From contig OZ059895.1 of NCBI GenBank assembly GCA_964057225.1, forward strand, positions 16,058,001 to 16,122,000: DNA of 64,000 nt, written 5' to 3'. The notes under the pieces are model-generated. The model was not told the DNA's origin. It ran no database searches and was given only the letters and a program-made list of their open reading frames with translations. This document shows, piece after piece, positions 735-62,710 of the stretch (its first letter is position 1; every line of letters begins with the position of its first letter). A program made the translations under genes and the position numbers. The stretch is from Auanema rhodensis. Lineage: Eukaryota > Animalia > Nematoda.

Positions 735-899
735 TGTTTTCTTCCAGGTAATGCCCTGAGGGTTAAATTATCCGTAAATGTATTGTTTCATTGGCTAAAT
801 AGTTGTGAACGGGATGGTCGCCAATACTTTCGGGTTCTTCCCGCTTGAGTTGCAATTAAAACCTGATCGAATGTTTTTCCTCAAGATTCAGAAATTGAA

Positions 900-940
900 T
901 AAAGTGAAACCCATATGAGATACCAAACAAGGTATGGCCT
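900..940 (+). promoter_or_regulatory. Probable proximal sequence element (PSE) region of U1, once per unit
   Basis: Position -65 to -25 of U1. The GAAACCCATATGAGATACCAA core is invariant in both sub-arrays while neighbouring spacer varies. Assigned mainly by position. Confidence 0.4.
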
Positions 941-964
941 GTTAGACTCATTGAGTTGACCAAT

Positions 965-1126
965 AAACTTACCTGGCTGGGAGCTGCCCGCGATCATCAA
1001 GGCGGGCTCTCTACGAAGAGGCCTGATCATTGCACTTTTCGATTGGGCTGACCTGTATGGCAATCTCGAGTTGAGATTCGCCAACAGCTAAATTTTTGCG
1101 TTTGGGGATGCGTTCGCGCGTCCCTT
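965..1126 (+). ncRNA. U1: U1 spliceosomal snRNA (first copy; representative of ~60)
   Basis: 5' AAACTTACCTGG splice-site recognition end, stem-loop I loop GATCATCAAG (U1-70K site), loop II ATTGCAC (U1A site), SL3 GGCAATCTCGAGTTGAGATTCGCC, Sm site AATTTTTG (1091-1098), terminal hairpin GGGGATGCG-TTCG-CGCGTCCCT. Closely resembles C. elegans U1 as I recall it. Confidence 0.97.
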
Positions 1127-1367
1127 ACAATCTCGAATATTAATTTCATGCTTGGTAATCAGAATATCGTGAGAGTTTCACGTGAAATCCACGTACATCC
1201 ACACGCTCACTTCATTTTTGAATTATAATAGCACTTGACCGGTTGTTCTTCATGTTATAAAATTACTTCTATACTACAATTTTTCTTTTCAGGAAATTGT
1301 GATCATTGAAGCCAAGGGAGAGACTTAGAATCGTAACGTTGGTATTCTGATAACGTGTAGTCTCATA

Positions 1368-1439
1368 TCCTCGGTAGTATAGTGGTGAGTATCCGCGTCT
1401 GTCACATGCGAGACCCGGGTTCAATTCCCGGCCGGGGAG
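1368..1439 (+). tRNA. tRNA-Asp: tRNA-Asp(GTC) (first copy; representative of ~63)
   Basis: 72-nt cloverleaf TCCTCGG.../...CCGGGGAG, A box TAGTATAGTGG, anticodon arm CGCGT-CTGTCAC-ATGCG (GTC at 1401-1403), B box GGTTCAATTCC. Matches nematode tRNA-Asp as I recall it. Confidence 0.98.
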
Positions 1440-1443
1440 AATG

Positions 1444-1447
1444 TTTT
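1444..1447 (+). terminator. Pol III terminator (TTTT) after tRNA-Asp, present in essentially every unit
   Basis: TTTT 4 nt after the discriminator base, with a second TTTT about 20 nt later. Confidence 0.8.
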
Positions 1448-4274
1448 ACACCTGTTCAGTATGTTTTCTTCCAGGTAATGCCCTGAGGGTTAAATTATCC
1501 GTAAATGTATTGTTTCATTGGCTAAATAGTTGTGAACGGGATGGTCGCCAGTACTTTCGGGTTCTTCCCGCTTGAGTTGCAATTAAAACCTGATCGAATG
1601 TTTTTCCTCAAGATTCAGAAATTGAATAAAGTGAAACCCATATGAGATACCAAACAAGGTATGGCCTGTTAGACTCATTGAGTTGACCAATAAACTTACC
1701 TGGCTGGGAGCTGCCCGCGATCATCAAGGCGGGCTCTCTACGAAGAGGCCTGATCATTGCACTTTTCGATTGGGCTGACCTGTATGGCAATCTCGAGTTG
1801 AGATTCGCCAACAGCTAAATTTTTGCGTTTGGGGATGCGTTCGCGCGTCCCTTACAATCTGAAGTATAAATTTCATGCTTGGTAATCAGAATATCGTGAG
1901 AGTTTCACGTGAAATCCACGTACATCCACACGCTCACTTCATTTTTGAATTATAATAGCACTTGACCGGTTGTTCTTCATGTTATAAAATTACTTCTATA
2001 CTACAATTTTTCTTTTCAGGAAATTGTGATCATTGAAGCCAAGGGAGAGACTAGAATCGTAACGTTGGTATTCTGATAACGTGTAGTCTCATATCCTCGG
2101 TAGTATAGTGGTGAGTATCCGCGTCTGTCACATGCGAGACCCGGGTTCAATTCCCGGCCGGGGAGAATGTTTTACACCTGTTCAGTATGTTTTCTTCCAG
2201 GTAATGCCCTGAGGGTTAAATTATCCGTAAATGTATTGTTTCATTGGCTAAATAGTTGTGAACGGGATGGTCGCCAATACTTTCGGGTTCTTCCCGCTTG
2301 AGTTGCAATTAAAACCTGATCGAATGTTTTTCCTCAAGATTCAGAAATTGAATAAAGTGAAACCCATATGAGATACCAAACAAGGTATGGCCTGTTAGAC
2401 TCATTGAGTTGACCAATAAACTTACCTGGCTGGGAGCTGCCCGCGATCATCAAGGCGGGCTCTCTACGAAGAGGCCTGATCATTGCACTTTTCGATTGGG
2501 CTGACCTGTATGGCAATCTCGAGTTGAGATTCGCCAACAGCTAAATTTTTGCGTTTGGGGATGCGTTCGCGCGTCCCTTACAATCTCGAATATTAATTTC
2601 ATGCTTGGTAATCAGAATATCGTGAGAGTTTCACGTGAAATCCACGTACATCCACACGCTCACTTCATTTTTGAATTATAATAGCACTTGACCGGTTGTT
2701 CTTCATGTTATAAAATTACTTCTATACTACAATTTTTCTTTTCAGGAAATTGTGATCATTGAAGCCAAGGGAGAGACTTAGAATCGTAACGTTGGTATTC
2801 TGATAACGTGTAGTCTCATATCCTCGGTAGTATAGTGGTGAGTATCCGCGTCTGTCACATGCGAGACCCGGGTTCAATTCCCGGCCGGGGAGAATGTTTT
2901 ACACCTGTTCAGTATGTTTTCTTCCAGGTAATGCCCTGAGGGTTAAATTATCCGTAAATGTATTGTTTCATTGGCTAAATAGTTGTGAACGGGATGGTCG
3001 CCAATACTTTCGGGTTCTTCCCGCTTGAGTTGCAATTAAAACCTGATCGAATGTTTTTCCTCAAGATTCAGAAATTGAATAAAGTGAAACCCATATGAGA
3101 TACCAAACAAGGTATGGCCTGTTAGACTCATTGAGTTGACCAATAAACTTACCTGGCTGGGAGCTGCCCGCGATCATCAAGGCGGGCTCTCTACGAAGAG
3201 GCCTGATCATTGCACTTTTCGATTGGGCTGACCTGTATGGCAATCTCGAGTTGAGATTCGCCAACAGCTAAATTTTTGCGTTTGGGGATGCGTTCGCGCG
3301 TCCCTTACAATCTCGAATATTAATTTCATGCTTGGTAATCAGAATATCGTGAGAGTTTCACGTGAAATCCACGTACATCCACACGCTCACTTCATTTTTG
3401 AATTATAATAGCACTTGACCGGTTGTTCTTCATGTTATAAAATTACTTCTATACTACAATTTTTCTTTTCAGGAAATTGTGATCATTGAAGCCAAGGGAG
3501 AGACTTAGAATCGTAACGTTGGTATTCTGATAACGTGTAGTCTCATATCCTCGGTAGTATAGTGGTGAGTATCCGCGTCTGTCACATGCGAGACCCGGGT
3601 TCAATTCCCGGCCGGGGAGAATGTTTTACACCTGTTCAGTATGTTTTCTTCCAGGTAATGCCCTGAGGGTTAAATTATCCGTAAATGTATTGTTTCATTG
3701 GCTAAATAGTTGTGAACGGGATGGTCGCCAATACTTTCGGGTTCTTCCCGCTTGAGTTGCAATTAAAACCTGATCGAATGTTTTTCCTCAAGATTCAGAA
3801 ATTGAATAAAGTGAAACCCATATGAGATACCAAACAAGGTATGGCCTGTTAGACTCATTGAGTTGACCAATAAACTTACCTGGCTGGGAGCTGCCCGCGA
3901 TCATCAAGGCGGGCTCTCTACGAAGAGGCCTGATCATTGCACTTTTCGATTGGGCTGACCTGTATGGCAATCTCGAGTTGAGATTCGCCAACAGCTAAAT
4001 TTTTGCGTTTGGGGATGCGTTCGCGCGTCCCTTACAATCTCGAATATTAATTTCATGCTTGGTAATCAGAATATCGTGAGAGTTTCACGTGAAATCCACG
4101 TACATCCACACGCTCACTTCATTTTTGAATTATAATAGCACTTGACCGGTTGTTCTTCATGTTATAAAATTACTTCTATACTACAATTTTTCTTTTCAGG
4201 AAATTGTGATCATTGAAGCCAAGGGAGAGACTTAGAATCGTAACGTTGGTATTCTGATAACGTGTAGTCTCATA

Positions 4275-10090: not shown

Positions 10091-10162
10091 TCCTCGGTAG
10101 TATAGTGGTGAGTATCCGCGTCTGTCACATGCGAGACCCGGGTTTAATTCCCGGCCGGGGAG
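10091..10162 (+). pseudogene. tRNA-Asp B-box mutant (C56T); the same allele occurs at 15907 and 20996
   Basis: GGTTTAATTCC replaces GGTTCAATTCC. Confidence 0.7.
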
Positions 10163-24043: not shown

Positions 24044-25317
24044 GGTTCAAGTGCAGTTTCCCCCCCCCCCCGGCCCTAAGCCCCGCCTCTTTTGCCGAAA
24101 AGCACACAGTTGCTTAAAAAGTAAAAAAATTATAATAAATATCAAATAAAAAACAATCGATATCTCGAAGTCAATCTGACAGCATGTTCGCTCTAAGAGA
24201 TAAAGTTGCAACTAAAGAAAGTGCAATTCGATTTTTGCAAGAAAAGGGGTTGTTACCAGATGCTATGATCTGTAGCCTCTGCCAATCTGAAATGAAGCTC
24301 TCAATAGAGCGTGAACGGTGGAGATGCCCCAAAAAAAGCTGTAGGAAAGAACAGCAATTAAAAAAAAGAACAGTTTTAGAAGGTATAGCTTCACATTTAA
24401 GATGTAAATAATTAAAATTAAATAGGTTCTCACTTATCGTATTCCAACTTCATACTCTTCATTTACTGTTGGACAAAGGAGTATACTACAGTTCAATTTT
24501 GCAAAGATGAGCTGGGAATAGGATCCAATCATACTGTAGTAGATTATAATAATTTTTTACGTGAAGTCTGTGCCCACTCTCTTTTAAAAAATCCAGTTAA
24601 AATAGGGGGCCCTAATATGACTGTAGAGATAGATGAGACCCTTGTATCTAAGCGTAAATATAATGTTGGTAGGGTTAAGCCAGAGCAATGGGTGTTTGGG
24701 GGGATATGTCGTGAGACAAAGGAATGTTTTTTGTATGCAGTGCCTGATAGAAGTAGAGCTACTCTCCAGGAATGTATTGAGTTCTCAATAAATCCTGGAA
24801 GTACTATAATATCAGACTGCTGGCGCGCTTATGGGGGGTTAGAATCTTTAAACAAGCAATACACCCATCTGACGGTTAACCATTCATATAATTTTGTTGA
24901 CCCCGAAACCGCAGCTCATACTAATACTATAGAGGGAGTTTGGAACATTGCGAAAGCCAAATTTAAGCGTTTATGGGGGGTACAGACTCACATGTTAGAT
25001 GGTTATTTGTGTGAATTTATGTGGCGCCGTAGACACATAAATTCAGACCTTTTTGAAAATATGTTATGTGATATAAATGATTTTATGAATGATATTAATA
25101 ACCGTGAATAATAAAAATATTATAATTAAATTTAATCAAAAGAAAATCAAAACTAAACACCGAGAATGGGGGGTAAACCCCCCAAACCCCCCGTTCTGAA
25201 AGGTATGTCTCCCGCCGGTTTAAAATTATACAGGTTGACAAAAAGTATGCACCGTTTGGCAAAAGAGGCGGGGCTTAGGCGGGGGGGGGGGGGGGGGGGG
25301 GAAACTGCACTAGAGCC
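24044..25317 (+). mobile_element. Merlin (IS1016/IS1595-like) DNA transposon, 1274 bp
   Basis: TIRs GGTTCAAGTGCAGTTTC(C)n..CCTAAGCCCCGCCTCTTTTGCC / GGCAAAAGAGGCGGGGCTTAGGC(G)nAAACTGCACTAGAGCC. 8-bp TSD CGTAAATG (24036-24043, 25318-25325). The array period across it is 2009 = 727+1274+8. Confidence 0.93.
24184..25111 (+). CDS. Merlin transposase, two exons (24184-24382, 24426-25111), ~294 aa
   Basis: A 43-nt GT..AG intron joins the track ORFs in frame (..LEGSHLSY..KIGGPNMTVEIDET..). Motifs: N-terminal CxxC..WRC zinc ribbon, VEIDET, IISDCWRAY, VNHSYNFVDP, HTNTIEGVW, YLCEFMWRRR. Confidence 0.9.
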
Positions 25318-25509
25318 CGTAAATGTATTGTTTCATTGGCTAAATAGTTGTGAACGGGATGGTCGCCAATACTTTCGGGTTCTTCCCGCTTGAGTTGCAA
25401 TTAAAACCTGATCGAATGTTTTTCCTCAAGATTCAGAAATTGAATAAAGTGAAACCCATATGAGATACCAAACAAGGTATGGCCTGTTAGACTCATTGAG
25501 TTGACCATT

Positions 25510-25671
25510 AAACTTACCTGGCTGGGAGCTGCCCGCGATCATCAAGGCGGGCTCTCTACGAAGAGGCCTGATCATTGCACTTTTCGATTGGGCTGACCTG
25601 TATGGCAATCTCGAGTTGAGATTCGCCAACAGCTAAATTTTTGCGTTTGGGGATGCGTTCGCGCGTCCCTT
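25510..25671 (+). ncRNA. U1: U1 snRNA
   Basis: Full-length copy after Merlin. Confidence 0.95.
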
Positions 25672-25912
25672 ATAATCTGAAGTATAAATTTCATGCTTGG
25701 TAATCAGAATATCGTGAGAGTTTCACGTGAAATCCACGTACATCCACACGCTCACTTCATTTTTGAATTATAATAGCACTTGACCGGTTGTTCTTCATGT
25801 TATAAAATTACTTCTATACTACAATTTTTCTTTTCAGGAAATTGTGATCATTGAAGCCAAGGGAGAGACTTAGAATCGTAACGTTGGTATTCTGATAACG
25901 TGTAGTCTCATA

Positions 25913-25984
25913 TCCTCGGTAGTATAGTGGTGAGTATCCGCGTCTGTCACATGCGAGACCCGGGTTCAATTCCCGGCCGGGGAG
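25913..25984 (+). tRNA. tRNA-Asp: tRNA-Asp(GTC)
   Basis: Full-length copy. Confidence 0.96.
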
Positions 25985-26236
25985 AATGTTTTACACCTGT
26001 TCAGTATGTTTTCTTCCAGGTAATGCCCTGAGGGTTAAATTATCCGTAAATGTATTGTTTCATTGGCTAAATAGTTGTGAACGGGATGGTCGCCAACACT
26101 TTCGGGTTCTTCCCGCTTGAGTTGCAATTAAAACATGATCGAATGTTTTTCCTCAAGATTCAGAAATTGAATAAAGTGAAACCCATATGAGATACCAAAC
26201 AAGGTATGGCCTGTTAGACTCATTGAGTTGACCATT

Positions 26237-26376
26237 AAACTTACCTGGCTGGGAGCTGCCCGCGATCATCAAGGCGGGCTCTCTACGAAGAGGCCTGATC
26301 ATTGCACTTTTCGATTGGGCTGACCTGTATGGCAATCTCGAGTTGAGAATCGCCAACAGCTAAATTTTTGCGTTTG
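26237..26376 (+). pseudogene. U1 pseudogene lacking the 3' terminal stem-loop
   Basis: GCGTTTG is joined directly to TTCTGAAGTA, so SL4 is deleted. Confidence 0.85.
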
Positions 26377-26602
26377 TTCTGAAGTATTAATTTCATGCTT
26401 GGTGATCAGAATATCTTGAGAGTTTCACGTGAAATCCACGTACATCCACACGCTGACTTCATTTTTGAATTATAATAGCACTTGACCGGTTGTTCTTCAT
26501 GTTATAAAGTTACTTCTATACTACAATTTTTCTTTTCAGGAAATTGTGATCATCGAAGCGTAGTCAATGTAGTCTATAAGATGTGCGATATAGTGTTCCA
26601 GA

Positions 26603-26845
26603 TGTAGCGGTATTAATAGAGCATAATGGATAAACATAAGACTCATGAAAAGAAAGGTTTATTCTACGTAATGGTTACAATAAGTTACGATAAGAAATAA
26701 AGAGATATAAACTATAGGTGAGTTCCGAGGAGATGACAAGCCATCCTTAGTCATTCCATGAGACAGAACTAAAGTCTGAGTTCCATACAAAAGGCGTGTC
26801 AGCTCCTCTCGTCTCTTGTCGTCTAGTTCTAACCCGCCTGCTACA
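26603..26845 (-). mobile_element. Candidate 3' LTR of the minus-strand retroelement
   Basis: Termini TGTAGC...GCTACA, minus-strand AATAAA at ~26658, and minus-strand GTCGCGAGGACGCGAC shortly before it. An alternative left end is at 26568 (TGTAG). Confidence 0.5.
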
Positions 26846-27481
26846 TATTGATCATCCGGATGGAACGTGCCATTTTTTCGAGTTTATGTCGCGTCCTCGC
26901 GACTATCAAAATGTGTGGCTTGTTTCAATCGTAGCAAGAGGTTTAGAGGTTTTACATGTTAAAATACATTGTTGTTGTGCAAATAATACAAAATTATACA
27001 ATATTAACCTTAACAATATTGTCTAAAAAGGATTTAATAAGTTTTAAGTAAAATAATACATGAGTATAGAGCAAAAACACAATCTTTTAAGAATACTAGA
27101 GCTATATTTTGTCAGCGAAAGTGCATGAAAGTAGCTTTTTGGGCACGACGCTGTGTGTCTAACCAATATAGAGCAGAGTAGCGAGAGCTAAGTTATATTC
27201 TCAATGAAGCTAGACTGTTTCTTCAGCTTTGAAAGAAAACATTATTTCTTGGAATTATTAAAACAATCCCATATAATTTCCAGAAATGAACTTTTATGAT
27301 AATTTGTAGCTATTATTATTATATTTTTTTTTCGATGTGCTTGAAACATGACTGCTCATTAAGTTATAGCTTACTGCTCATCTATCTATTGCTTGTGTTG
27401 GTAAAATTAATTTTTAGCTCTAGTTTCCTTAAAAAGATTTTATGCAGAATGTTTAACAATAGTGTAATCAATGTGGTTGTT

Positions 27482-28048
27482 TTATCTTCTTCTTGATGGT
27501 ATCCAATTATGATCTGATGGGTCTTCTGAGTCAATTTCGGTGTCTAATTCTTCATTATTGTTTCCGTGTATAACTTCGATAATTTCAATGTCACTGTCGT
27601 TATCTGAGTCGCTGTTTCTAGCTTTGGAGCGAGTGTTGTGCGCTGCTCCATATGTTGAACTTCGATTGAAAAGTTTCAAGTTGTCTTTGTGTATATCTTG
27701 GAGTTTTCCAAAAGGATTCTTGATTTGTACCATTGATCCTTTTATTTTGATGACCTCAAAGGGTCCATCATAACATTTCCTCAGCTTCTGACCTATTTTA
27801 TGTGACTTAATGGTCAACATAACTTGGTCTCCTTCACGGATGTCCCTTTCTTCAATTGGTTGTCTTGAATCGTGTTTCTTCTTTGCTTGTTGCTGATATT
27901 TTTCCAAGTTGTCTTGAATCACGTGGTTTGCTTCGGTTAATTTGCATTTCTTTAATGTTGGAGGCATGAGTAGTGCTCCCCCTATTGCTTTTGTGCATGC
28001 TTGGTAGCTTGATGCACAAGGCAGCAGTATTGCTGCTGTTAATGCCAT
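27482..28048 (-). pseudogene. Remnant of the gypsy integrase C-terminus (GPY/F module)
   Basis: IREGDQVML..KLRKCYDGPFEVIK..IHKDNLK; the catalytic core is absent. Confidence 0.75.
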
Positions 28049-28120
28049 TACAACAGTTAATGAGAGTGGTGAAAGAGAGATGGAGTTAACTCTTGAAGAG
28101 CTCCTATTTCTTCCTCTCGA

Positions 28121-32130: not shown

Positions 32131-32387
32131 GTCTAGTTTTAAAATTATGACTAGAAATAGGTGACTAAAGATTACAATAACTATATTTACAGAATTATGG
32201 TGTTTAGGAATGAGTCTTATGCTTCAAAACAACAATAACGGTATGAGGAAGGTGACATATAGTAAGGGGAGAAAATCCAAACTGATATGCTTAAGCCAAC
32301 TCGACCTGACGAATAAATTTAAATTTGGAGATCAGTTTGTAAGAATGTCGCAGGATTTTTCGGACTATAGCGAATATAAGTTATTAA

Positions 32388-34932: not shown

Positions 34933-35389
34933 TTAAAATTAAACATCCTCTCACTTGTTGTGAGGTTTCCCGTACGATTTTTAAGCGTTTTTTTATATTT
35001 TTGGATGGTAAATGCTAAAGGTTGTCTGAACGATTTTAAACGCAAAATGTAATAGTCCTTATCGCAAAATTATTTAAATTTCAAATTGGCATGCTTTTCA
35101 TCCACAAAATTTAAGGAATAACTGGAGTTATTCTTTCCTCAAACCCGAAATCATTCCTTAAAAGGAGAATGGTGTGGGTAATAATCAAAATATATAAAAT
35201 CTTTAGGTGAATCTGTTCACGAATTCAGCCTAAAGTCCTCATGTGGCTTCGAGGTCGGGTAACAGTATAAATCAGATGTTTATAGCAAGGATATGTGACT
35301 TAGGTTCAGACATGACAAAATTGTGAACAACGGGATCAAGTAAAATAAATTCTTCCCAAAATGTATAATTTTTCTCTCTTATTATGAGA

Positions 35390-35628
35390 GGTATTCTGAT
35401 AACGTGTAGTCTCATATCCTCGGTAGTATAGTGGTGAGTATCCGCGTCTGTCATAAGCGAGACCCAGGTTCAATTCCCGGCCGGGGAGAATGTTTTACAC
35501 CTGTTCAGTATGTTTTCTTCCAGGTAATGCCCTGAGGGTTAAATTATCCGTAAATGTATTGTTTCATTGGCTAAATGGTTGTGAACGGGATGGTCGCCAA
35601 TACTGTCGGGTTCTTCCCGCTTGAGTTG
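35390..35628 (+). repeat. Isolated partial array unit
   Basis: Unit sequence from GGTATTCTGATAACG to the MULE TSD. Confidence 0.9.
35417..35488 (+). pseudogene. tRNA-Asp, degenerate copy
   Basis: CTGTCATAAGCG breaks the anticodon stem and CCCAGG breaks the T stem. Confidence 0.75.
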
Positions 35629-38222
35629 GGGTCTGAGACGTTTCGTCGTCTCCTATTTTTACAACCTCTCCCCAGCAAGCCTAACGGTCGTAAATTATAC
35701 CACACGTGTTTTACTCTCAGTTTTTGGTCGTTTAGACTTCTAAAAATTACCCAAAAACTTAAACAGTTCATAAAAAATCAAGGTTTTCAATCTAAACGGC
35801 AAGGAGGTTTTTGTGTTAGAAAAAAAATATATGGTTCAAAAAATTTATTAGAGTTTAGTTTTTCAAGTTAAATGATTCAAAAATAAGATTTTCTGGTGTT
35901 AAATTTCGCCATCTCCTCGACATATGCTATTATTTCTTCCTGATTAGGCAGTCGGTTATTGGAGATGCTCTTGAAGTTTTCAAACTGAACCTCAATCCGT
36001 TGTTGCCTCTCAATTACGTTTTTTCTTTTTTTCCTGGCAGGCTCAACATTCGATGACAAAGCGATCAGGACATGATTAGCCATCAAATTTTCACCATGAA
36101 AAAAAGTAATTAATTCAGAAAGAGGAGGATGAGAACAAGATAAAATAGTCTTCATTTTATGGTGAAAGAGAGATTCAACATTATTAGATGTACAAAACTG
36201 TTTTATGTCCCATTTGCTCCAATAATGTCGCAAAGGTCCTTCAATCCATGTTTCATTCACATAACTGATCATTTGAAGACAAGAAGAATATGATGGATGA
36301 TCAGAAGAAACAGGAGAATTGAGTAACCCGGACCGTGAGATAAGATCAGTTTGAAGGAAGAGCAAGCCCAGCAGCCGACCATGCCATTGTTTGATTTCAA
36401 TGGATTGCTTCTCTGCTTGTGTCAAACCTAGTTGAAGAAACCGTCTGTTCAAGCTCTGAGCATAATGAAATGCACATCCTTGAACAGAATTAAAAATAGT
36501 TTCAGCTTCCCTTATTACAGCGATCTCAAAATCACAGATAAAAATAAGGTTTTCAACTATGCAACCAACGTTGGAGAGAGCTAGTGCAATATGTTGAAGA
36601 AGCCTTCTATAAGTGAACCTACTCTTATTTTTTAAAATGGAATAGAAAAGAGGTACAGTTGTTCCATTTCTGCAACCGCCCATGATGGTATATGTTTGTT
36701 CCATATCCAAAGGCTGGTATTTGAAACAACCGTCCCCAAGCAAATGAGTTAAACCATTCTGAACAGCTAGTTCCAAACAAAATGTATCAAAATACAAATG
36801 AAACTCGCTGTCATGAAAATGCAAGAACGTACGATCATTGATAGTTTTGGACAAAGACAGAGGAACATTGGTCATGGATGTTCTTAAGTCTTTACGAGAA
36901 CTTAAAGCCCTTGTAATAGCTCTACGTCTACTATCGTAGCCACCATGAAACCAAGCAGAGGAAACTTCTTGCTTTTCATGCTCTTCTAACTCAGATTCAT
37001 GAAATATTTTTTTTATTTCATTGACAAATAAGGAATATGCTTTCATCTCAAAACATGAGTCTGAACTTTTAATATTCTGAGTTAGAGAGTATGTGATATT
37101 TTTGCATTTGTTAATAGAAAACAAAAATGGATCACAATAATGGTTTTGAGCAACAGGATTTTCGAGAAATACATTATTTTCTACTTTGATAGAAGTGTAT
37201 TTACCCAAATGTTTACAACCCGTGCAACGATAAATAGAATAAGCTTTTTGAGAACTTTTACTACTGAATTGGTAGCGATACAGCAAGTTTTCAAATTTAT
37301 ATTCTAAACAGGGGTGTACACCCTGCTTAGAAGGCGCAATGAGAGCGGCGTATGAGTTAGGATTTGCAGATTGCGAAGAAAATGAAGAAGAAGGAGAGGG
37401 AACAGAAGAAGAAGGAGAGGGAACAGAAGAAGAAGGAGAGAGAACAGGTAAAGAAGGAGAGGAAACAGAAGGAGGAGAAGAAGAAAGAGAAGATGACGAT
37501 GAAGAATGAACGGCAGAAGAAGAAGAAGAAGGCTGAATAGAAAGATGTGAAGTAGAAGAAGAGAACAGTGGAACAGTCCTTCTGTTGACAGTAGGAACAG
37601 TAACTGTAGCAACAGATTCAACTGAAGAAGATGCCGCAGATGAATTTGCTAGAGAAAGAGCAGAAGCAAAATTAACATTTTGCTGCCTCAATGGAGGGAT
37701 ATTGAAAGATGGAAGAGTGAAATTCAAAAATGAGAGTGAAGTTACATCATTTGAATAAACTTCAAGATTCTGAGTATTTACCGAAGAATTATTGAAAAAG
37801 ATAGTTATGTTCTCCGAAGGAACATTATCAAAAGGCTGAGAAACAAGAACAAATTTACCCTGAGCGTTAATCATCAGAGAAAATGGACAGAAAGTAGAAG
37901 GAAAAATCATGATGAACGAGAAAAGTTGAGAAAGTGTGAATAAGCAAACTTATCGAAAGAAAAGATAAACTAACAACTATTACTATGAACTCACGTAACT
38001 GTTGACTTGAAACTGTTTGATGATAGCCTGGTTGATAGAACTGTATGTTTATTTTAATTTCTGCTTTTTTCAATTTATATTTTGATGGCACTTCAAGGTA
38101 TGTAGCCACTTATATCTGACTTCTATAGATTTATAGCTTTAATAGCACCCCGAGTTACATGAACACTGACACTTGTCAGCACATTAGTTCACAAACTAGA
38201 GACGACAAAACGTCCGCCACCC
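35629..38222 (-). mobile_element. Mutator-like element (MULE), 2594 bp
   Basis: 9-bp TSD CTTGAGTTG (35620-35628, 38223-38231). Imperfect 24-bp TIRs GGGTCTGAGACGTTTCGTCGTCTC / GAGACGACAAAACGTCCGCCACCC. Confidence 0.9.
35877..37910 (-). CDS. MULE transposase, 677 aa uninterrupted ORF
   Basis: FLYWCH-like YRCTGC..NHYC, then LLGDGCFKYQP, VPLFYSILKNK, FICDFEIA, GCAFHYAQ (CxxH) and TSNNVESLFH. Ser/Pro-rich N-terminal tract. The true start may be in an upstream exon. Confidence 0.88.
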   Translation of the reverse strand: MIFPSTFCPFSLMINAQGKFVLVSQPFDNVPSENITIFFNNSSVNTQNLEVYSNDVTSLSFLNFTLPSFNIPPLRQQNVNFASALSLANSSAASSSVESVATVTVPTVNRRTVPLFSSSTSHLSIQPSSSSSAVHSSSSSSLSSSPPSVSSPSLPVLSPSSSVPSPSSSVPSPSSSFSSQSANPNSYAALIAPSKQGVHPCLEYKFENLLYRYQFSSKSSQKAYSIYRCTGCKHLGKYTSIKVENNVFLENPVAQNHYCDPFLFSINKCKNITYSLTQNIKSSDSCFEMKAYSLFVNEIKKIFHESELEEHEKQEVSSAWFHGGYDSRRRAITRALSSRKDLRTSMTNVPLSLSKTINDRTFLHFHDSEFHLYFDTFCLELAVQNGLTHLLGDGCFKYQPLDMEQTYTIMGGCRNGTTVPLFYSILKNKSRFTYRRLLQHIALALSNVGCIVENLIFICDFEIAVIREAETIFNSVQGCAFHYAQSLNRRFLQLGLTQAEKQSIEIKQWHGRLLGLLFLQTDLISRSGLLNSPVSSDHPSYSSCLQMISYVNETWIEGPLRHYWSKWDIKQFCTSNNVESLFHHKMKTILSCSHPPLSELITFFHGENLMANHVLIALSSNVEPARKKRKNVIERQQRIEVQFENFKSISNNRLPNQEEIIAYVEEMAKFNTRKSYF

Positions 38223-38728
38223 CTTGAGTTGCAATTAAAACCTGATCGAATGGTTTTCCTCAAGATTCACAAATTGAATAAAGTGAAACCCATATGAGAT
38301 ACCAAACAAGGTATGGCCTGTTAGACTCATTGAGTTGACCATTAAACTTACCTGGCTGGGAGCTGCCCGCGATCATCAAGGCGGGCTCTCTACGAAGAGG
38401 CCTGATCATTGCACTTTTCGATTGGGCTGACCTGTATGGCAATCTCGAGTATAAATTTATGCTTGGTGATCAGAATATCTTGAGAGTTTCACGTGAAATG
38501 GGCTGACATGTATGGCAATCTCGAGTTGAGATTCGCCAACAGCTAAATTTTTGCGTTTGGGGATGCGTTCGCGCGTCCCTTACAATCTGAAGTATAAAGT
38601 TCATGCTTCGTGATTAGAATATCTTGAGAGTTTCACGTGAGATCCACGTACATCCACACGCTCACTTCATTTTTGAAATATATTAGCATGATTGATGCTA
38701 AGGGAGAGACTTAGAATCGTAACGTTGG
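38223..38728 (+). pseudogene. Rearranged array unit with a split U1 (5' part 38344-38450; 3' part ~38499-38581)
   Basis: U1 jumps at CAATCTCGAGT to the 3' flank, then restarts at TGGGCTGACATG. There is a further spacer deletion at ~38689. Confidence 0.85.
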
Positions 38729-39939
38729 CTTTCTCTTTTCTTAAGATTGACCTTATGCTCTTTATTTCTTACCGCTACACCAATGAATACCATACACGTT
38801 TATTTTAAGTCCATTTTTGCTCTCCAAATTATAAATTGCTCGACTTGAAACAACAAAATGAAGGCGCCAATTTGTTTTAAGGTACAGATACAAGGGATCT
38901 TGCTTAAATGCAAGATAGGACCAATACAATTTTTGCCCGCCGTCCTCAATCAATTTCGCCAAACGAGAAATTATAATTGTTCACATTTTATTTTGGGCAT
39001 AAAGAAGTTGATTATTGGAGCAAAAATTCATAAAGACGCGCGCAATTGATTATAGTTTGTATATATTGTGGTCAGAACTAGAATTTCAAAACATTATTAT
39101 ATTCAGACGTACAAGATCAATTTACATATTATTTTGCGGGAAACCGAAAACGGTTATATAAAATCAATATAAAAACAGACCACACTAGTCCGAAAAAGCC
39201 TGGTAAATCTGCAATAAGACTTCTCAGCTCTTTTTTGACAGTCAGGTCAAGTTGGCGGAAGCATAACTGCTACGGATTTTATTCCGGTAGATTATGTCAC
39301 CTTCCTCAAATCATTTCGTTGTTTCAATTCATAAGATACCCCTCATCTCTTACAGTAATACTAAGTAATTTGGATATGTTTAAAAATAGACGTAATTTTC
39401 TCATTCTCAAAAAGAAATTCACTTAGTTCAACGCAGTTTGGCTTATTTTGATCAAGAAAAAGGACAGCCTTTTCAATAATTTTCCTCAAACATCATTAGC
39501 ATGCACAATGTCAAAAACATTTTGAGCAAAACATGCTATTTAAGGAAAAAGGAATGAGGACAAGATTGAAAAACACATAAGGCCATTTTCTTAACAAAAA
39601 CAGAGCAAAGCGCACAAAAATAAAAACACAGAGTACAAGCTTTATTTATTCAAAACCCCCACTTGTAAGCTAGCTGTCTCTCAAACTCTGCAGCAAGAGA
39701 GATAGGCTCGTAACTGGGATTGAGGTATTCGGGAAACTCTCTCCCCAGTGAGGCCCTCAGCTACAATCCAAGCGAAGAGCTATCATAACATACATCAATT
39801 TCAAACAATATTTTACATAATAATTCATAAAATAAAGGCTGCCTATCGGAATACCAACTCCAGGGAAGTGCGACAAGCCCACACGGGAGAGCGGCATAAA
39901 AATGCGCGCACTGGTCACGGAAGCAGAGAAGCCCTACGA

Positions 39940-41382
39940 GTTTTGGGCCTTGCTCAGATCACTCCTACCTTCAGAGTATTTTTAAGTCCTCTTAAGAAGG
40001 TTGATCTTAATATGTGATCCTTATGTGGGTCATCGCTGGCGAAAGCACTAAGGCTTATTGTTCGCAAAGCTTGAGCAAAGGCATCAATCGAAAGATCCCC
40101 TTGACTAGTGTTTTGAAGGCTGATCAGTGCTGGTTCCTGATTATATTCAGGACAGAGATTTGATGTTAAAGCTGCTAACAGATCGTTCCATGAACCCGAT
40201 GTTTCAAGGTGTTCAGGAGTTTGTTTGTATGCTTCTTCCGCCGCATCATTTTTAAGAAGCAACGGCAGAAGAGTCAACCTTTCAGGTATTACTAGGCCAA
40301 GTGCATTAGCGAAGACATTAGATTTAGCGGTAAAGTCGCGGAAATTGCGGCTACCGTCATAAACAGGGCAGTAGGGTGATGTTAAAACTTGGACGATTGT
40401 TGTTTTCCCCGCTCCGGGTAAATTGGTTGCGGGCTCAATCATTTTTTTCGGAACAGTTATTACTGTATATGCAGATCTTGAACTTCCTGACGTAGGAGTA
40501 ATGTGCTCTGTTTGGTTATATTGGTTAGGTGTCGTCAATTCGTCTAATCTTGGACTATTGAGAATTGAGGTTGATGTTTGTGGGTTATTTTTCAAAAGTT
40601 TTCTCTGCTTCGGTGAGGTGATTGGAGATAACGTATAGCGCGTGTATGTATTGGGTATTGTAGCGAGTCGTTGTGCTCGGCTAGATTTTGGGTTTGGGTC
40701 TTTGTTTGAGCGATTCAATAAATCAACGACTTTGTTTTTAAGAGATTGTAAGTCTGTTGTTGAAGGTTAACCAGTAGGTTCTTGACTTGAGAGAGAGAAA
40801 GAGAGATATCAGAATTATTTAAATTTTTATTATTTTTATGTATATTTGAAGAGCGTACCTTTTCTTTCGTAGTGGTGTTCGGTGTCTGTTCGTCTATGAT
40901 CAAGGGTCGCTCGTTGTCTCCAGATGGTATGTAGTCCGGATCGCTAGAATGTTCTGAAGGAGAAAACGTACCTGCGCGGGGCGTGTAAAATTTTTCGACG
41001 TTAGGCTTCCCCTCTGCTGTGTCTTCGTTGATGATAGCGACACTTTGCGCGCGAGTTCGGCTTCTGGTTACTGGAGCTGAATCGCGTGGATCCGGGTTGG
41101 AGTGTGTACTAAGAGGTACAGCTGAGTTATACCTTCTCTCCACCTTGTTAGGGCTCTTGGTTTGAAAAAACCTTGAGTGTTTTATTACGTGTGGGATGAT
41201 GGGATTTTAACGTAAATAGGTGGGTATGTAAGCTTAGTTGTTGGTGATCAGTTGGGAAAAGTTAGATTGAGACTGACGACTGGTTTGGACAAGTCGGAAG
41301 GATAGGAATGAATCTAAGGTTCTGGCCATAACTTTAAATCTGCCTTCTACCGTACTTTGGAATTGGACTTTGGTTATCTTGG
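39940..41382 (-). mobile_element. Second, diverged and truncated copy of the gypsy-like element (leader, upstream ORF 40715-41143, gag 39954-40718)
   Basis: High similarity to 28525-29920. gag stops at a different TGA and the element ends after RPKT. Confidence 0.85.
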
Positions 41383-41855
41383 TCTCATATTCTCGGTAGT
41401 ATAGTGGTGAGTAACCACACGTTACGATTCTTAGATTCATTCGTATCCTTCCGACGGGTCTCGCATGTGACATCGTATCCTTCCGAGGGGTCTCGCATGT
41501 GACAGACGCGGATACTATACTACCGAGGATATGAGACCAAGATAACCAAAGTCCAATTCCAAAGTACGGTAGAAGGCAGATTTAAAGTTATGGCCAGAAC
41601 CTTAGATTCATTCCTATCCTTCCGACTTGTCCAAACCAGTCGTCAGTCTCAATCTAAGTTTTCCCATCTTATCAGAATACCAACGTTACGATTCTAGATG
41701 GTTAAATTGGTCTCATATTCTCGGTAGTATAGTGGTGAGTATCCGCGTCTGTCACATGCGAGACCCGTCGGAAGGATACGAATGAATCTAAGGTTCTGGC
41801 CATAACTTTAAATCCGCCTTCCACCGTATTTTGGAATTGGACTTTGGTTAAATTG
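41253..41855. repeat. Inverted and direct patchwork of retroelement leader and tRNA-Asp fragments
   Basis: ~153-bp inverted repeat 41253-41405 / 41514-41666, antisense tRNA pieces 41455-41530, inverted spacer 41669-41696, truncated tRNA 41718-41767. Confidence 0.85.
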
Positions 41856-57900: not shown

Positions 57901-60900
57901 TGGCAAAATAGTTGTGAACGGGATGGTCGCCAATATTGTCGGGTTCTTCCAGCTTGAGTTGCAATTAAAACTTGATCGAATGTTTTTCCTCAAGATTCAG
58001 AAATTTAATAAAGTGAAACCCATATGAGATACCAAGCAAAGTATGGCCTGTTAGACTCATTGAGTTGAACATTAAACTTACCTGGCTGGGAGCTGCCCGC
58101 GATCATCAAGGCGGGCTCTCTACGAAGAGGCCTGATCATTGCACTTTTCGATTGGGCTGACCTGTATGGCAATCTCGAGTTGAGATTCGCCAACAGCTAA
58201 ATTTTTGCGTTTGGGGATGCGTTCGCGCGTCCCTTACAATCTGAAGTATAAAGTTCATGCTTCGTGATTAGAATATCTTGAGAGTTTCACGTGAGATCCA
58301 CGTACATCCACACGCTCACTTCATTTTTGAATTATAATAGCACTTGACCGGTTGTTCTTCATGTTATAAAGTTACTTCTATACTACAGTTTTTCTTTTCA
58401 GGAAATTGTGATCATCGAAGCTAAGGGAGAGACTTAGAATCGTAACGTTGGTATTCTGATAACGTGTAGCCTCATATCCTCGGTAGTATAGTGGTGAGTA
58501 TCCGCGTCTGTCACATGCGAGACCCGGGTTCAATTCCCGGCCGGGGAGAATGTTTTACACCTGTTCAGTATGTTTTCTTCCAGGTAATGCTCTGAAGGTT
58601 AAATTATCCGTAAATATGTTGTTTCATTGGCAGAATAGTTAAGAACGGGATGGTCGCCAATATTGTCGGGTTCTTCCCGCTTGAGTTGCAATTAAAACTT
58701 GATCGAATGTTTTTCCTCAAGATTCAGAAATTTAATAAAGTGAAACCCATATGAGATACCAAGCAAAGTATGGCCTGTTAGACTCATTGAGTTGAACATT
58801 AAACTTACCTGGCTGGGAGCTGCCCGCGATCATCAAGGCGGGCTCTCTACGAAGAGGCCTGATCATTGCACTTTTCGATTGGGCTGACCTGTATGGCAAT
58901 CTCGAGTTGAGATTCGCCAACAGCTAAATTTTTGCGTTTGGGGATGCGTTCGCGCGTCCCTTACAATCTCGAGTATTAATTTCATGCTTGGTAATCAGAA
59001 TATCGTGAGAGTTTCACGTGAAATCCACGTACATCCACACGCTTACTTCATTTTTGAATTATAATAGCACTTGACCGGTTGTTCTTCATTTTATAAAATT
59101 ACTTCTATACTACAGTTTTCTTTTCAGGAAATTGTGATCATTGAAGTTAAGGGAGAGACTTAGAATCGTAACGTTGGTATTCTGATAACGTGTAGCCTCA
59201 TATCCTCGGTAGTATAGTGGTGAGTATCCGCGTCTGTCACATGCGAGACCCGGGTTCAATTCCCGGCCGGGGAGAATGTTTTACACCTGTTCAGTATGTT
59301 TTCTTCCAGGTAATGCCCTGAGGATTAAATTATCCGTAAATATGTTGTTTCATTGGCAAAATAGTTGTGAACGGGATGGTCGCCAATATTGTCGGGTTCT
59401 TCCAGCTTGAGTTGCAATTAAAACTTGATGGAATGTTTTTCCTCAAGATTCAGAAATTTAATAAAGTGAAACCCATATGAGATACCAAACAAGGTATGGC
59501 CTGTTAGACTCATTGAGTTGACCATTAAACTTACCTGGCTGGGAGCTGCCCGCGATCATCAAGGCGGGCTCTCTACGAAGAGGCCTGATCATTGCACTTT
59601 TCGATTGGGCTGACCTGTATGGCAATCTCGAGTTGAGATTCGCCAACAGCTAAATTTTTGCGTTTGGGGATGCGTTCGCGCGTCCCTTACAATCTGAAGT
59701 ATAAAGTTCATGCTTCGTGACTAGAATATCGTGAGAGTTTCACGTGAAATCCACGTACATCCACACGCTCACTTCATTTTTGAAATATATTAGCACTTGA
59801 CCGGTTGTTCTTCATGTTATAAAATTACTTCTATACTACAGTTTTTCTTTTCAGGAAATTGTGATCATTGAAGCTAAGGGAGAGACTTAGAATCGTAACG
59901 TTGGTATTCTGATAACGTTTAGCCCCATATCCTCGGTAGTATAGTGGTGAGTATCCGCGTCTGTCACATGCGAGACCCGGGTTCAATTCCCGGCCGGTGA
60001 GAATGTTTTACACCTGTTCAGTATGTTTTCTTCCAGGTAATGCCCTGAGGGTTAAATTATCCGTAAATATGTTGTTTCATTGGCAGAATAGTTAAGAACG
60101 GGATGGTCGCCAATGTTGTCGGGTTCTTCCCGCTTGAGTTGCAATTAAAACTTGATGGAATGTTTTTCCTCAAGATTCAGAAATTTAATAAAGTGAAACC
60201 CATATGAGATACCAAACAAGGTATGGCCTGTTAGACTCATTGAGTTGACCATTAAACTTACCTGGCTGGGAGCTGCCCGCGATCATCAAGGCGGGCTCTC
60301 TACGAAGAGGCCTGATCATTGCACTTTTCGATTGGGCTGACCTGTATGGCAATCTCGAGTTGAGATTCGCCAACAGCTAAATTTTTGCGTTTGGGGATGC
60401 GTTCGCGCGTCCCTTACAATCTGAAGTATAAAGTTCATGCTTCGTGATTAGAATATCTTGAGAGTTTCACGTGAGATCCACGTACATCCACACGCTCACT
60501 TCATTTTTGAAATATATTAGCACTTGACCGGTTGTTCTTCATGTTATAAAGTTACTTCTATACTACAGTTTTTCTTTTCAGGAAATTGTGATCATTGAAG
60601 CTAAGGGAGAGACTTAGAATCGTAACGTTGGTATTCTGATAACGTTTAGCCCCATATCCTCGGTAGTATAGTGGTGAGTATCCGCGTCTGTCACATGCGA
60701 GACCCGGGTTCAATTCCCGGCCGGGGAGAATGTTTTACACCTGTTCAGTATGTTTTCTTCCAGGTAATGCCCTGAGGGTTGAATTATCCGTAAATATGTT
60801 GTTTCATTGGCAAAATAGTTGTGAACGGGATGGTCGCCAATATTGTCGGGTTCTTCCAGCTTGAGTTGCAATTAAAACTTGATCGAATGTTTTTCCTCAA

Positions 60901-61707
60901 GATTCAGAAATTTAATAAAGTGAAACCCATATGAGATACCAAGCAAGGTATGGCCTGTTAGACTCATTGAGTTGACCATTAAACTTACCTGGCTGGGAGC
61001 TGCCCGCGATCATCAAGGCGGGCTCTCTACGAAGAGGCCTGATCATTGCACTTTTCGATTGGGCTGACCTGTATGGCAATCTCGAGTTGAGATTCGCCAA
61101 CAGCTAAATTTTTGCGTTTGGGGATGCGTTCGCGCGTCCCTTACAATCTCGAGTATTAATTTCATGCTTGGTAATCAGAATATCGTGAGAGTTTCACGTG
61201 AAATCCACGTACATCCACACGCTCACTTCATTTTTGAATAATAATAGCACTTGACCGGTTGTTCTTCATGTTATAAAATTACTTCTATACTACAGTTTTT
61301 CTTTTCAGGAAATTGTGATCATTGAAGCTAAGGGAGAGACTTAGAATCGTAACGTTGGTATTCTGATAACGTTTAGCCCCATATCCTCGGTAGTATAGTG
61401 GTGAGTATCCGCGTCTGTCACATGCGAGACCTGGGTTCAATTCCCGGCCGGGGAGAATGTTTTACACCTGTTCAGTATGTTTTCTTCCAGGTAATGCCCT
61501 GAGGATTAATTTATCCGTAAATATGTTGTTTCATTGGCAAAATAGTTGTGAACGGGATGGTCGCCAATATTGTCGGGTTCTTCCAGCTTGAGTTGCAATT
61601 AAAACTTGATCGAATGTTTTTCCTCAAGATTCAGAAATTTAATAAAGTGAAACCCATATGAGATACCAAGCAAAGTATGGCCTGTTAGACTCATTGAGTT
61701 GAACATT

Positions 61708-61869
61708 AAACTTACCTGGCTGGGAGCTGCCCGCGATCATCAAGGCGGGCTCTCTACGAAGAGGCCTGATCATTGCACTTTTCGATTGGGCTGACCTGTA
61801 TGGCAATCTCGAGTTGAGATTCGCCAACAGCTAAATTTTTGCGTTTGGGGATGCGTTCGCGCGTCCCTT
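61708..61869 (+). ncRNA. U1: U1 snRNA (last copy)
   Basis: Consensus copy. Confidence 0.95.
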
Positions 61870-62109
61870 ACAATCTGAAGTATAAAGTTCATGCTTCGTG
61901 ATTAGAATATCTTGAGAGTTTCACGTGAGATCCACGTACATCCACACGCTCACTTCATTTTTGAAATATATTAGCACTTGACCGGTTGTTCTTCATGTTA
62001 TAAAATTACTTCTATACTACAGTTTTCTTTTCAGGAAATTGTGATCAATGAAGCTAAGGGAGAGACTTAGAATCGTAACGTTGGTATTCTGATAACGTGT
62101 AGCCTCATA

Positions 62110-62181
62110 TCCTCGGTAGTATAGTGGTGAGTATCCGCGTCTGTCACATGCGAGACCCGGGTTCAATTCCCGGCCGGGGAG
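62110..62181 (+). tRNA. tRNA-Asp: tRNA-Asp(GTC) (last copy)
   Basis: Consensus copy. Confidence 0.96.
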
Positions 62182-62389
62182 AATGTTTTACACCTGTTCA
62201 GTATGTTTTCTTCCAGGTAATGCCCTGAGGGTTAAATTATCCGTAAATATGTTGTTTCATTGGCAGAATAGTTAAGAACGGGATGGTCGCCAATATTGTT
62301 GGGTTCTTCCCGCTTGAGTTGCAATTGAAACTTGATGGAATGTTTTTCCTCAAGATTCAGAAATTTAATAAAGTGAAACCCATATGAGA

Positions 62390-62710
62390 TACCAAAGAAG
62401 GTAAAAAAGAAAAACTAAATATCCGCTTCTCTTTTTCGTTAATTCCTGATGGATGAAAATAATAAAGAAGGCTTAAGCTAACTAGCCTGCAGTCATACAT
62501 AGATCCATTAGTGATACTTCCATATATTATTACTATATGGTTTATTTGCAGAAATTTTAAAAAACAACACAACAGATTGTATAATATTACAAAACACATG
62601 AAATATATATATGAAGACAAAGTTAAGCTAATACATCTTTTCTCTTGAGAATATGTTGGAATTAGAAAAAGTGTAATTGAGGTAACAGAAAACAATTTAT
62701 CATTTATGAA
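62390..62710 (-). other. Possible exon(s) of an unidentified membrane-protein gene abutting the array
   Basis: Minus-strand TTTTTCAG acceptor at ~62711 followed by an open hydrophobic frame (FINDKLFSVTSITLFLIPTY...). I could not build a complete gene model. Confidence 0.3.

Follow-up and report, generated by a model that had tools for sequence, protein, structure and literature searches.

In C. elegans, the 5S rRNA and SL1 genes share a tandem repeat of about 110 copies with a 1-kb unit. Tandemly repeated embryonic U1 genes are present in sea urchin and Xenopus, and U1 genes are linked to the 5S rDNA in crustaceans and fishes. In trypanosomatids, a divergent tRNA gene lies ~100 bp upstream of the snRNA gene, which Pol III transcribes via the A and B boxes of this tRNA. 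The clustering of U1 genes has been reviewed (PMC12274263), and in zebrafish the snRNA loci are both clustered and dispersed, with embryo-specific and somatic variants (10.1101/858944). For the nematode Auanema rhodense, a genome assembly built from HiFi reads has been described, with 19,554 tRNA genes plus arrays of 5S, tRNA and U2 genes (10.64898/2026.08.27.747507). Neither U1 nor a composite unit of U1 and tRNA-Asp is mentioned in the main text of that preprint, and our literature search found no paper describing such a unit, in line with the original prediction, in which no co-array of this kind was known from nematodes.

The window (the whole 64-kb stretch of DNA analysed) contains, between positions 734 and 62403, a tandem array of 62 U1 genes (60 intact) and 63 tRNA-Asp(GTC) genes, all present on a single strand in a 727-bp unit. 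An array of ~60 copies had been predicted and is confirmed. The Rfam model RF00003 (gathering score 69.5 bits) matched the window 62 times with scores of 79.8–110.6 bits over the model positions 1–166, and the Rfam tRNA model matched 63 times (42–55 bits versus 29), all on the + strand; ARAGORN assigned the identity Asp(GTC) to 63 of the 63 tRNA copies. The spacing from one U1 to the next is 727 bp in 53 cases and 726 bp in five. The gap between the U1 at 965–1126 and the tRNA at 1368–1439 is 241 bp and the gap from the tRNA end (1439) to the following U1 (1692) is 252 bp, exactly as predicted. The predicted limits (735 and 62403) also hold, but the array is not continuous: it consists of two blocks, 734–26559 and 41856–62403, separated by ~15 kb of transposon debris, with a further transposon inserted in the first block and two of the 62 U1 copies broken (26237 and 38344). 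The first block starts 22 nt past a tRNA end, while the second ends 30 nt short of where another U1 would begin. Feature coordinates are presented in Table 1.

Table 1. Features of the U1 and tRNA-Asp array, in window coordinates.
Feature	Position	Strand	Remarks
Array block A, 32 head-to-tail 727-bp units (U1 + tRNA-Asp)	734–24043	+	
DNA-transposon insertion in spacer 2, 1,273 bp	24044–25316	+	unit coordinates on either side overlap by 9 bp
Array block A, remainder (last 1.7 units)	25317–26559	+	terminal U1 at 26237–26404 degenerate, 79.8 bits
Interruption between blocks	26560–41855	.	transposon debris and stranded unit fragments
LTR-retroelement gag ORFs			within the interruption
piggyBac-type transposase	33553–34368		within the interruption
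Unit fragment	35390–35628		within the interruption; carries tRNA 35417–35488
MULE-type ORF	35877–37910		within the interruption
Unit fragment	38220–38728		within the interruption; carries rearranged U1 38344–38581
tRNA pieces	41382–41767		within the interruption
Array block B, 28 units	41856–62403	+	
Example tRNA-Asp(GTC) gene, 72 nt	1368–1439	+	internal A and B boxes; 55.4 bits; ARAGORN anticodon GTC
TTTT run (Pol III terminator)	1444–1447	+	5 nt past the tRNA; after 62 of 63 copies
tRNA-Ser(GCT) relic, decayed	1528–1597	+	between tRNA-Asp and the U1 promoter
PSE-like promoter box TGAAACCCATATGAGATACC	1632–1651	+	−60 to −41 of U1; identical in 59 of 62 units
Example U1 snRNA gene, 162 nt, array-type variant	1692–1853	+	107.9 bits, full model

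Since long stretches of identical repeats pose difficulties for assemblers, and our evidence consists of contigs rather than read depth, we considered the possibility that a few units had been inflated by the assembler. There are, however, 95 variable columns among the units, with block-specific variants, unique transposon insertions and stranded fragments. The 1,273-bp transposon is flanked by a 9-bp target duplication (unit positions 535–543) and its ORF (24617–25111) encodes an ISXO2/IS1595-like transposase domain (PF12762, E 6e-18). DNA runs from three studies contain 68–91% of the words of the unit, contigs of an independent run bridge both the U1-to-tRNA and the tRNA-to-U1 junctions, and in one run the word depth of the unit contigs exceeds that of the unique flank by a factor of ~10–20, a rough indication only. 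The variable columns, the insertions and the junction-bridging contigs rule out an artefact at the level of the unit, and with the HiFi origin of the assembly, inflation from a few units is extremely improbable.

Genome-wide counts were obtained for what is very probably the germline assembly of A. rhodense (180.9 Mb). A 42-mer from the 5′ part of the array-type U1 has 112 copies, and among the matches listed 100 of 100 are on C3 at 15.86–16.64 Mb, while a 45-mer from the 3′ part, common to the array and to four of five dispersed genes, has 116 copies. The array type thus accounts for ~112 of ~116 genomic U1 genes (~96%), of which the 62 in the window are over half, and the question raised in the prediction, whether most U1 genes lie here, is answered in the affirmative for the array family. 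The same question for tRNA-Asp has the opposite answer: only ~7% of the ~1,606 genomic copies are linked to U1, and the remaining 93% are mostly present in unrelated tRNA-only arrays. Very large tandem repeats have accumulated in this genome, and its arrayed tRNA genes number in the thousands.

The array resembles the nematode 5S–SL1 repeats in its unit of at most 1 kb, its ~100 copies, the combination of an Sm-class, presumably SNAPc-dependent Pol II gene with a Pol III gene and its rDNA-like homogenisation. It differs in its genes, U1 and tRNA-Asp on the same strand, and the 5S arrays of the host (529-bp unit) showed only 5S. With ~112 homogenised copies of a comparable unit and yet different genes, it is a variant of the 5S–SL1 kind rather than a member of it. 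As in the 5S-linked U1 genes of crustaceans and fishes, U1 is repeated together with a Pol III gene, but the partner is a tRNA instead of the 5S rRNA.

In the example gene the 5′ splice-site recognition sequence, the Sm site and the four stem-loops are intact, and the 5′ end AAACTTACCTGGC is found in 62 of 62 copies. The consensus array U1 is ~94% identical to the dispersed U1 genes; it has an intact Sm site and the same mRNA-binding end, and its differences are located in stem-loop I and loop II (positions 18, 20, 23, 24, 33–34, 42 and 46, and an extra U in loop II). It retains 47 predicted pairs, the stem differences from the dispersed copies being compensatory, and those in stem-loop I (G-C to A-U and U-A to C-G) maintain the fold. 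Upstream of the five dispersed U1 genes and of the U2 genes there is a box related to the PSE-like box of the array, at an equal distance. Compared to the box of the dispersed U1 and array-type U2 genes, three otherwise invariant positions are changed in the array (GC to AA and the final G to C), although the dispersed U2 box itself deviates at one of these three. Nearly all U1 copies of this genome belong to one tandem array family, whose U1 is a sequence variant and whose promoter box is altered. Judged from its sequence, the altered box could have weakened or retargeted the promoter. Only one array-type contig came from a run that is possibly RNA (X12); it also spans 24 nt upstream of U1 and may for this reason be DNA.

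The U1 and tRNA-Asp genes are 99–100% identical between array variants, where the spacers are only 52–96% identical, and almost no variation is seen in the 63 nt immediately preceding U1. In the window, where diversity within the array is below 4%, U1 and the tRNA show nucleotide diversities of 0.0038 and 0.0079, respectively, as compared to 0.036–0.038 in the spacers, that is 5–10 times lower in the genes; the consensus is matched exactly by 47 of the U1 copies and 44 of the tRNA copies, and of the eight positions with a fixed difference between the blocks all are in spacers. The prediction of a much stronger conservation in the genes than in the spacers is well borne out. Recent homogenisation could mimic part of this signal. 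The unit also contains a tRNA-Ser(GCT) relic, which no longer scores as a tRNA but is 74% identical to an intact tRNA-Ser in the array variant at 16.20 Mb (score 38, compared to 15 ± 2.2 on average for shuffled sequences). Since the tRNA-Ser has decayed in the window while U1 and tRNA-Asp have not, the array is old enough for its unselected parts to decay. Three adjoining small-RNA genes, presumably amplified together, two of them perfect and one decayed, provide a natural experiment separating selection from homogenisation.

This pattern bears on the reading of the array as a selfish or neutral satellite, in which most gene copies would be silent and their sameness would reflect recent amplification only. 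Such a reading would suit a host that accumulates tandem repeats, the colonisation of the array by transposons and the departure of its PSE from the canonical box. However, gene segments remain 99–100% identical where the spacers have diverged to 52–92% identity, the tRNA-Ser has decayed beside intact neighbours and the stem changes of U1 are compensatory, and we consider this explanation unlikely.

The original prediction went further and proposed a functional coupling: the tRNA gene, through bound TFIIIC or Pol III, may insulate the U1 genes or hold them open, and the shared unit would impose a dosage lock on both RNAs. In yeast and mammals, tRNA genes can serve as chromatin boundaries; in the array the alternation is strict, the spacing is even and conservation of the tRNA gene matches that of U1. 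A dosage lock is nevertheless contradicted by the 93% of tRNA-Asp copies that have no U1 linkage; a 439-bp tRNA-only array has only the tRNA and a few flanking bases in common with the 727-bp unit and is otherwise unrelated. A role of the tRNA as insulator or opener is not supported either. A neighbouring array variant contains 581-bp U1-only subunits with identical U1 and promoter, no tRNA was found within 1.5 kb of the five dispersed U1 genes or of the U2 genes (including the units of the U2 array), and U1 possesses its own PSE-like box. Moreover, decay of the tRNA-Ser, the tRNA closest to the U1 promoter, has left U1 conservation unaffected. A chromatin effect of TFIIIC may exist, but nothing in the analysis argues for it, and the coupling as a whole appears quite improbable. 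The adjacency of tRNA and snRNA genes also recalls the trypanosomatids, but here the tRNA is on the same strand and ends 252 bp upstream, and U1 contains an internal T5 run, which would stop Pol III. The strand, the gap, the PSE-like box and the U1-only subunits are not those of a tRNA-dependent promoter of the trypanosomatid type.

We therefore favour, with a probability of about 0.68, two independent transcription units, one of Pol II and one of Pol III, which unequal exchange multiplied together without regulatory coupling, as the explanation of an anatomy, copy numbers and a conservation pattern that are directly observed. An ancestral neighbourhood of U1, tRNA-Asp and tRNA-Ser would have given rise to tandem arrays on one chromosome through unequal exchange, and concerted evolution would maintain their homogeneity. 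Pol II would transcribe the variant U1 from a SNAPc-type PSE box of its own (−60 to −41), and Pol III the tRNA-Asp(GTC) from internal A and B boxes up to a T-run. Selection would preserve U1, its proximal promoter and tRNA-Asp, whereas spacer sequence drifts and the tRNA-Ser has been left to decay. As with the 5S–SL1 repeat of nematodes, the pairing would be a historical accident of co-amplification, because the array family holds ~96% of U1 but only ~7% of tRNA-Asp. The predicted rDNA-like amplified locus, alternating an snRNA gene of Pol II type with a tRNA gene presumably transcribed by Pol III, is supported, whereas the tempting coupling of the two gives way to a simpler reading of neighbours amplified together.

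It is possible, though we hold it tentatively, that there are two tiers of U1 genes, the clustered variant being produced in bulk in the germline or early embryo ('maternal-type') and the five dispersed canonical genes serving the soma. The variant beside canonical genes, which differ from it in stem-loop I and loop II but not at the mRNA-binding end, and the strict conservation of the variant PSE throughout all array variants are consistent with this. As in sea urchin, Xenopus and zebrafish (for the last, 10.1101/858944), a clustered U1 variant coexists with a few dispersed canonical genes and the end recognizing the 5′ splice site is unchanged; in contrast to those units, the array includes a tRNA gene and is known from sequence, its stage expression being putative. 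The more specific proposal for A. rhodense, that a ~110-copy clustered U1 with a variant PSE is made in bulk in the germline or early embryo and a handful of dispersed canonical genes serves the soma, is a little more doubtful. Whether nematodes have bulk clustered and canonical dispersed U1 genes, as fish, frogs and sea urchins do, becomes a testable question.

In its strong form, this idea would have the array restricted to the germline and removed by programmed DNA elimination. Somatic cells of the host lack 61% of the genome through elimination, and among the eliminated DNA are 5S, tRNA and U2 arrays (10.64898/2026.08.27.747507), which are likewise arrayed small-RNA genes of very probably the same genome. 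However, the germline-restricted list of the preprint comprises 5S, tRNA and U2 arrays without U1 (10.64898/2026.08.27.747507), and the U1 and tRNA-Asp array sits in non-satellite DNA, a placement favouring somatic retention. Its position relative to the satellites and break sites suggests that, unlike those arrays, it probably lies within somatically retained DNA. Satellite blocks on C3 are located at 9.5–13.5 Mb and 19.4 Mb, and break-site-like doublets at 4.999 and 19.211 Mb, the one at 19.21 Mb being strong. The region of 14–16.8 Mb is non-repetitive DNA with genes, with ordinary genes at 15.0–15.5 Mb on one side of the array.

The U1 and tRNA-Asp array is real, has an unusual gene content and dominates the number of U1 genes in the host genome. 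Rfam identified 62 U1 genes in the window (full-length model RF00003; scores of 79.8-110.6 bits, the gathering threshold being 69.5) together with 63 tRNA genes, all on the forward strand, and ARAGORN called all 63 tRNAs as tRNA-Asp(GTC). Alignment to the unit consensus placed the limits of the array at 734 and 62403, in agreement with the original prediction of about 60 copies at 735-62403. The predicted period and spacing were also reproduced on measurement: U1 starts lie 727 bp apart in 53 cases and 726 bp in five, with gaps of 241 bp from U1 to tRNA and 252 bp from tRNA to the next U1. Copies identical to the consensus make up 47 of the 62 U1 and 44 of the 63 tRNA genes, and two U1 copies are broken. 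In 11 units the tRNA has an array-specific change of C5 to U. The two array parts, blocks A and B, are separated by about 15 kb containing retroelement gag ORFs, a piggyBac-type transposase and a MULE-type ORF, and stranded fragments of the unit are scattered within this transposon DNA.

Coordinates of the array, its sister arrays and the surroundings on chromosome C3 (landscape from samples every 0.5 Mb)
Feature	Position	Strand	Remarks
Block A	window 734-26559	+	unit-consensus alignment
Transposon inside block A	window 24044-25316 (1,273 bp)		9-bp target duplication; ISXO2/IS1595-type transposase ORF
Block B	window 41856-62403	+	unit-consensus alignment
Higher-order repeat, 1,314 bp	C3 16.200-16.210 Mb (locus L014), also locus L013		733-bp + 581-bp subunits
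Diverged sister unit, 633 bp	C3 16.64 Mb
Satellites	C3 9.5-11.5 Mb
5S arrays	C3 12.0-13.5 Mb
Non-repetitive DNA	C3 14.0-16.8 Mb		phosphoesterase gene at 15.0 Mb; ion-channel genes and dispersed U2 at 15.5 Mb
tRNA-Thr array	C3 17.3 Mb
Other tandem repeats	C3 18.0-18.7 Mb
176-bp satellite	C3 19.4 Mb

Three smaller features are present between the blocks. A segment of about 950 bp occurs three times in near-identical form (29281-31617), each copy with an ORF of 109-144 aa and adjoining gag-like ORFs, and has a relative at 40715-41143; the triplicate is either an internal tandem duplication in a retroelement or a set of repeated LTR-like pieces. The region of the MULE-type ORF (677 aa, Ser/Pro-rich on the coding strand) contains a GAA-rich 21-bp repeat at 37375-37531. 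Flanking block B on the left, short tRNA-Asp fragments in both orientations (41382-41767), with a tandem repeat at 41441-41504 and one duplicated 32-bp piece, look like the scar of a rearrangement or of repeated insertion beside the tRNA.

Across the 58 complete units, 95 columns are variable, block-specific variants included, and this variation is unlike that of a collapsed or inflated repeat. Between 68 and 91% of the sampled unit words were present in the DNA runs of three studies. In an independent run, one contig joins the U1 interior to the tRNA across the spacer, and a second one joins the tRNA to the following U1, again across the spacer; the runs were seen as contigs and hence the comparison addresses the presence of the unit and its junctions, rather than copy number by depth.

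Genome-wide, the 5′ 42-mer of the array-type U1 occurs 112 times at up to two mismatches, and all 100 matches listed are located on C3 at 15.86-16.64 Mb, in sub-arrays of both orientations. A 45-mer from the 3′ half, common to the array type and to four of the five dispersed canonical genes, occurs 116 times. About 96% of the U1 genes of the genome are of the array type, 62 of them in the window alone. The five dispersed genes (four at C3 5.75-6.15 Mb, one on chromosome C7) score 109-116 bits with Rfam, above the array copies, and are 86-95% identical to array U1. The host genome contains thousands of arrayed tRNA genes, and the 72-nt tRNA-Asp alone occurs 1,606 times at up to three mismatches; set against 112 array-type U1 genes, only about 7% of the tRNA-Asp copies are linked to U1. 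Most copies in the genome thus belong to the array family in the case of U1 but not in that of tRNA-Asp, and the proposed locking of the dosage of the two RNAs fails on the same counts. Tandem arrays of tRNA-Asp alone, with a 439-bp unit, are present in both orientations at 14.40-14.54 Mb of chromosome C8 (loci L011 and L012, the orientation flipping inside L012). Derivation of the 727-bp unit from such an array is ruled out, because the two units have in common only the tRNA and a few flanking bases and their spacers are unrelated.

Compared to the dispersed genes, array U1 has two base pairs of stem-loop I altered on both sides (G-C to A-U and U-A to C-G) and one extra U in loop II, while its 5′ end, Sm site and stems III-IV are unchanged. 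The two types can be told apart at positions 18, 20, 23, 24, 33-34, 42 and 46 and by the additional U of loop II. Judged by its sequence, it would be a structurally sound variant rather than a pseudogene. Two sequencing runs, whose labelling as RNA is a guess, contain a 184-nt array-type contig that starts 24 nt upstream of U1 and is possibly DNA (X12), and a dispersed-type U1 contig including the 3′ flank (X25).

The sole upstream element common to the five dispersed U1 genes is a box at -60 to -41, roughly GCACCCATA-N-CAGATACG, and a related box is located at equal distance upstream of dispersed and arrayed U2 genes. In array U1 the box at -60 to -41 reads TGAAACCCATATGAGATACC and is identical in 59 of the 62 units. 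It departs at three positions (GC to AA, and the final G to C) which are invariant among dispersed U1 and array-type U2 genes, dispersed U2 differing at one of them. The U2 array on chromosome C1 (10.96-11.28 Mb, loci L044-L048) has a period of about 2.46 kb with many copies on both strands, and its PSE-like box, GCACTCGTAACAAGTACG, lies at a U1-like distance. Since no TATA-like element was found near -30 of array U1 and the gene has an internal T5 run (the Sm site), its features fit a Pol II rather than a Pol III gene; tRNA-Asp has standard internal boxes and is followed at 5 nt by TTTT in all but one of the 63 copies, the polymerase assignments of both genes being read from sequence.

The original prediction that the genes are far better conserved than the spacers is borne out both within and between arrays. 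Nucleotide diversity in the window is 0.0038 for U1 and 0.0079 for the tRNA, against 0.036-0.038 for the spacers. Between the sister arrays and the window unit, U1 and tRNA-Asp are each 99-100% identical, as compared to 53-96% for spacer 1 and 52-96% for the distal part of spacer 2; the 63 nt immediately upstream of U1 are almost constant across every array variant. The 733-bp subunit of the higher-order repeat contains U1, tRNA-Asp and an intact tRNA-Ser(GCT), and the 581-bp subunit contains U1 only. A stretch of the window at 1528-1597 aligns to positions 15-84 of this tRNA-Ser with 74% identity (score 38; shuffles 15 +/- 2.2). Rfam in E-value mode did not detect it as a tRNA, which rules it out as a scoring tRNA, and it is recognisable only through direct alignment to the intact gene. 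Because this relic aligns to the intact tRNA-Ser of the 16.20-Mb array, the ancestral cassette appears to have consisted of U1, tRNA-Asp and tRNA-Ser. The higher-order array at L014 and L013 keeps this three-gene cassette. Recent homogenisation might account for part of the uniformity of the genes; the decay of tRNA-Ser, with U1 and tRNA-Asp beside it kept perfect, argues against it as the whole explanation and for selection.

Several observations speak against the suggestion that the tRNA insulates each U1 gene or keeps it open. The 581-bp U1-only subunits have a gene and promoter identical to those of tRNA-linked U1, no tRNA was found within 1.5 kb of the dispersed U1 and U2 genes or of the arrayed U2 copies examined, and the decay of the promoter-proximal tRNA-Ser has left U1 conservation unaffected. 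The same absence of tRNA neighbours rules out that snRNA genes in this genome are generally linked to tRNAs, and the trypanosome model of tRNA-driven snRNA transcription does not match, whether in the orientation of the genes, their distance or the polymerase. TFIIIC might have an effect on chromatin at the array, though one that is unsupported. Co-amplification, rather than a new regulatory mechanism, is the best explanation of the array.

Among known architectures, the 5S-SL1 repeat of nematodes comes closest, a 1-kb unit of about 110 copies which combines a Pol III gene with a SNAPc-dependent gene of the Sm class. U1 is linked to 5S in crustaceans and fishes, and clustered variant U1 genes are present beside dispersed ones in sea urchin and Xenopus. 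Zebrafish has clustered variant U1 genes alongside dispersed ones as well (10.1101/858944). Our literature search found no paper on a U1 and tRNA-Asp array. The main text of the 2026 preprint on the Auanema rhodense germline genome describes neither U1 arrays nor a U1 and tRNA unit, and its Table S4 may list the array (10.64898/2026.08.27.747507).

The same preprint reports a 180.9-Mb HiFi germline assembly in seven chromosome-level scaffolds, 19,554 tRNA genes, a somatic loss of about 61% of the genome with 29-base palindromes as the break sites, and germline restriction of arrays of 5S rRNA, several tRNAs and U2 (10.64898/2026.08.27.747507). On C3, a palindromic doublet with telomere-like TAGGC is located at 4.999 Mb, at a border between satellite and genes. 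A pattern derived from this site and searched genome-wide recovered no more than about 7 of the 28 break sites that have been published and no inner site on C3; the motif is too degenerate for inner sites to be located in this way. Strong break-site-like doublets on C3 are those at 4.999 and 19.211 Mb. The latter consists of two inverted palindrome copies 103 bp apart (19,211,265-19,211,383), resembles the 4.999-Mb doublet and probably marks where terminal elimination begins on the right of C3. The simplest layout of the chromosome is eliminated, retained, eliminated, retained, eliminated, which would place the array in the right-hand retained segment. This placement agrees with the listing of U2, not U1, as germline-restricted (10.64898/2026.08.27.747507), and we favour retention of the array in the soma at odds of roughly two to one.

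The 5S arrays in the satellite-rich centre of C3 (loci L028, L030 and L031) consist of 529-bp units lying on both strands, and no SL RNA gene was found in the unit at Rfam gathering scores. The tRNA-Thr(AGT) tandem array (L039, C3 17.30 Mb), with a unit of about 470 bp and split by a retroelement integrase ORF, is a further array of one tRNA isoacceptor into which a mobile element has moved. Within the IS1595-like insert of block A, the sequence at 24666-24688 matches the break-site-like palindrome pattern at 14 of its 16 defined positions. The same half-site is repeated at least nine times near 18.7 Mb on C1 and is present once on C3, at 9.34 Mb, so that half motifs of the break-site-like kind may be spread by a transposon family.
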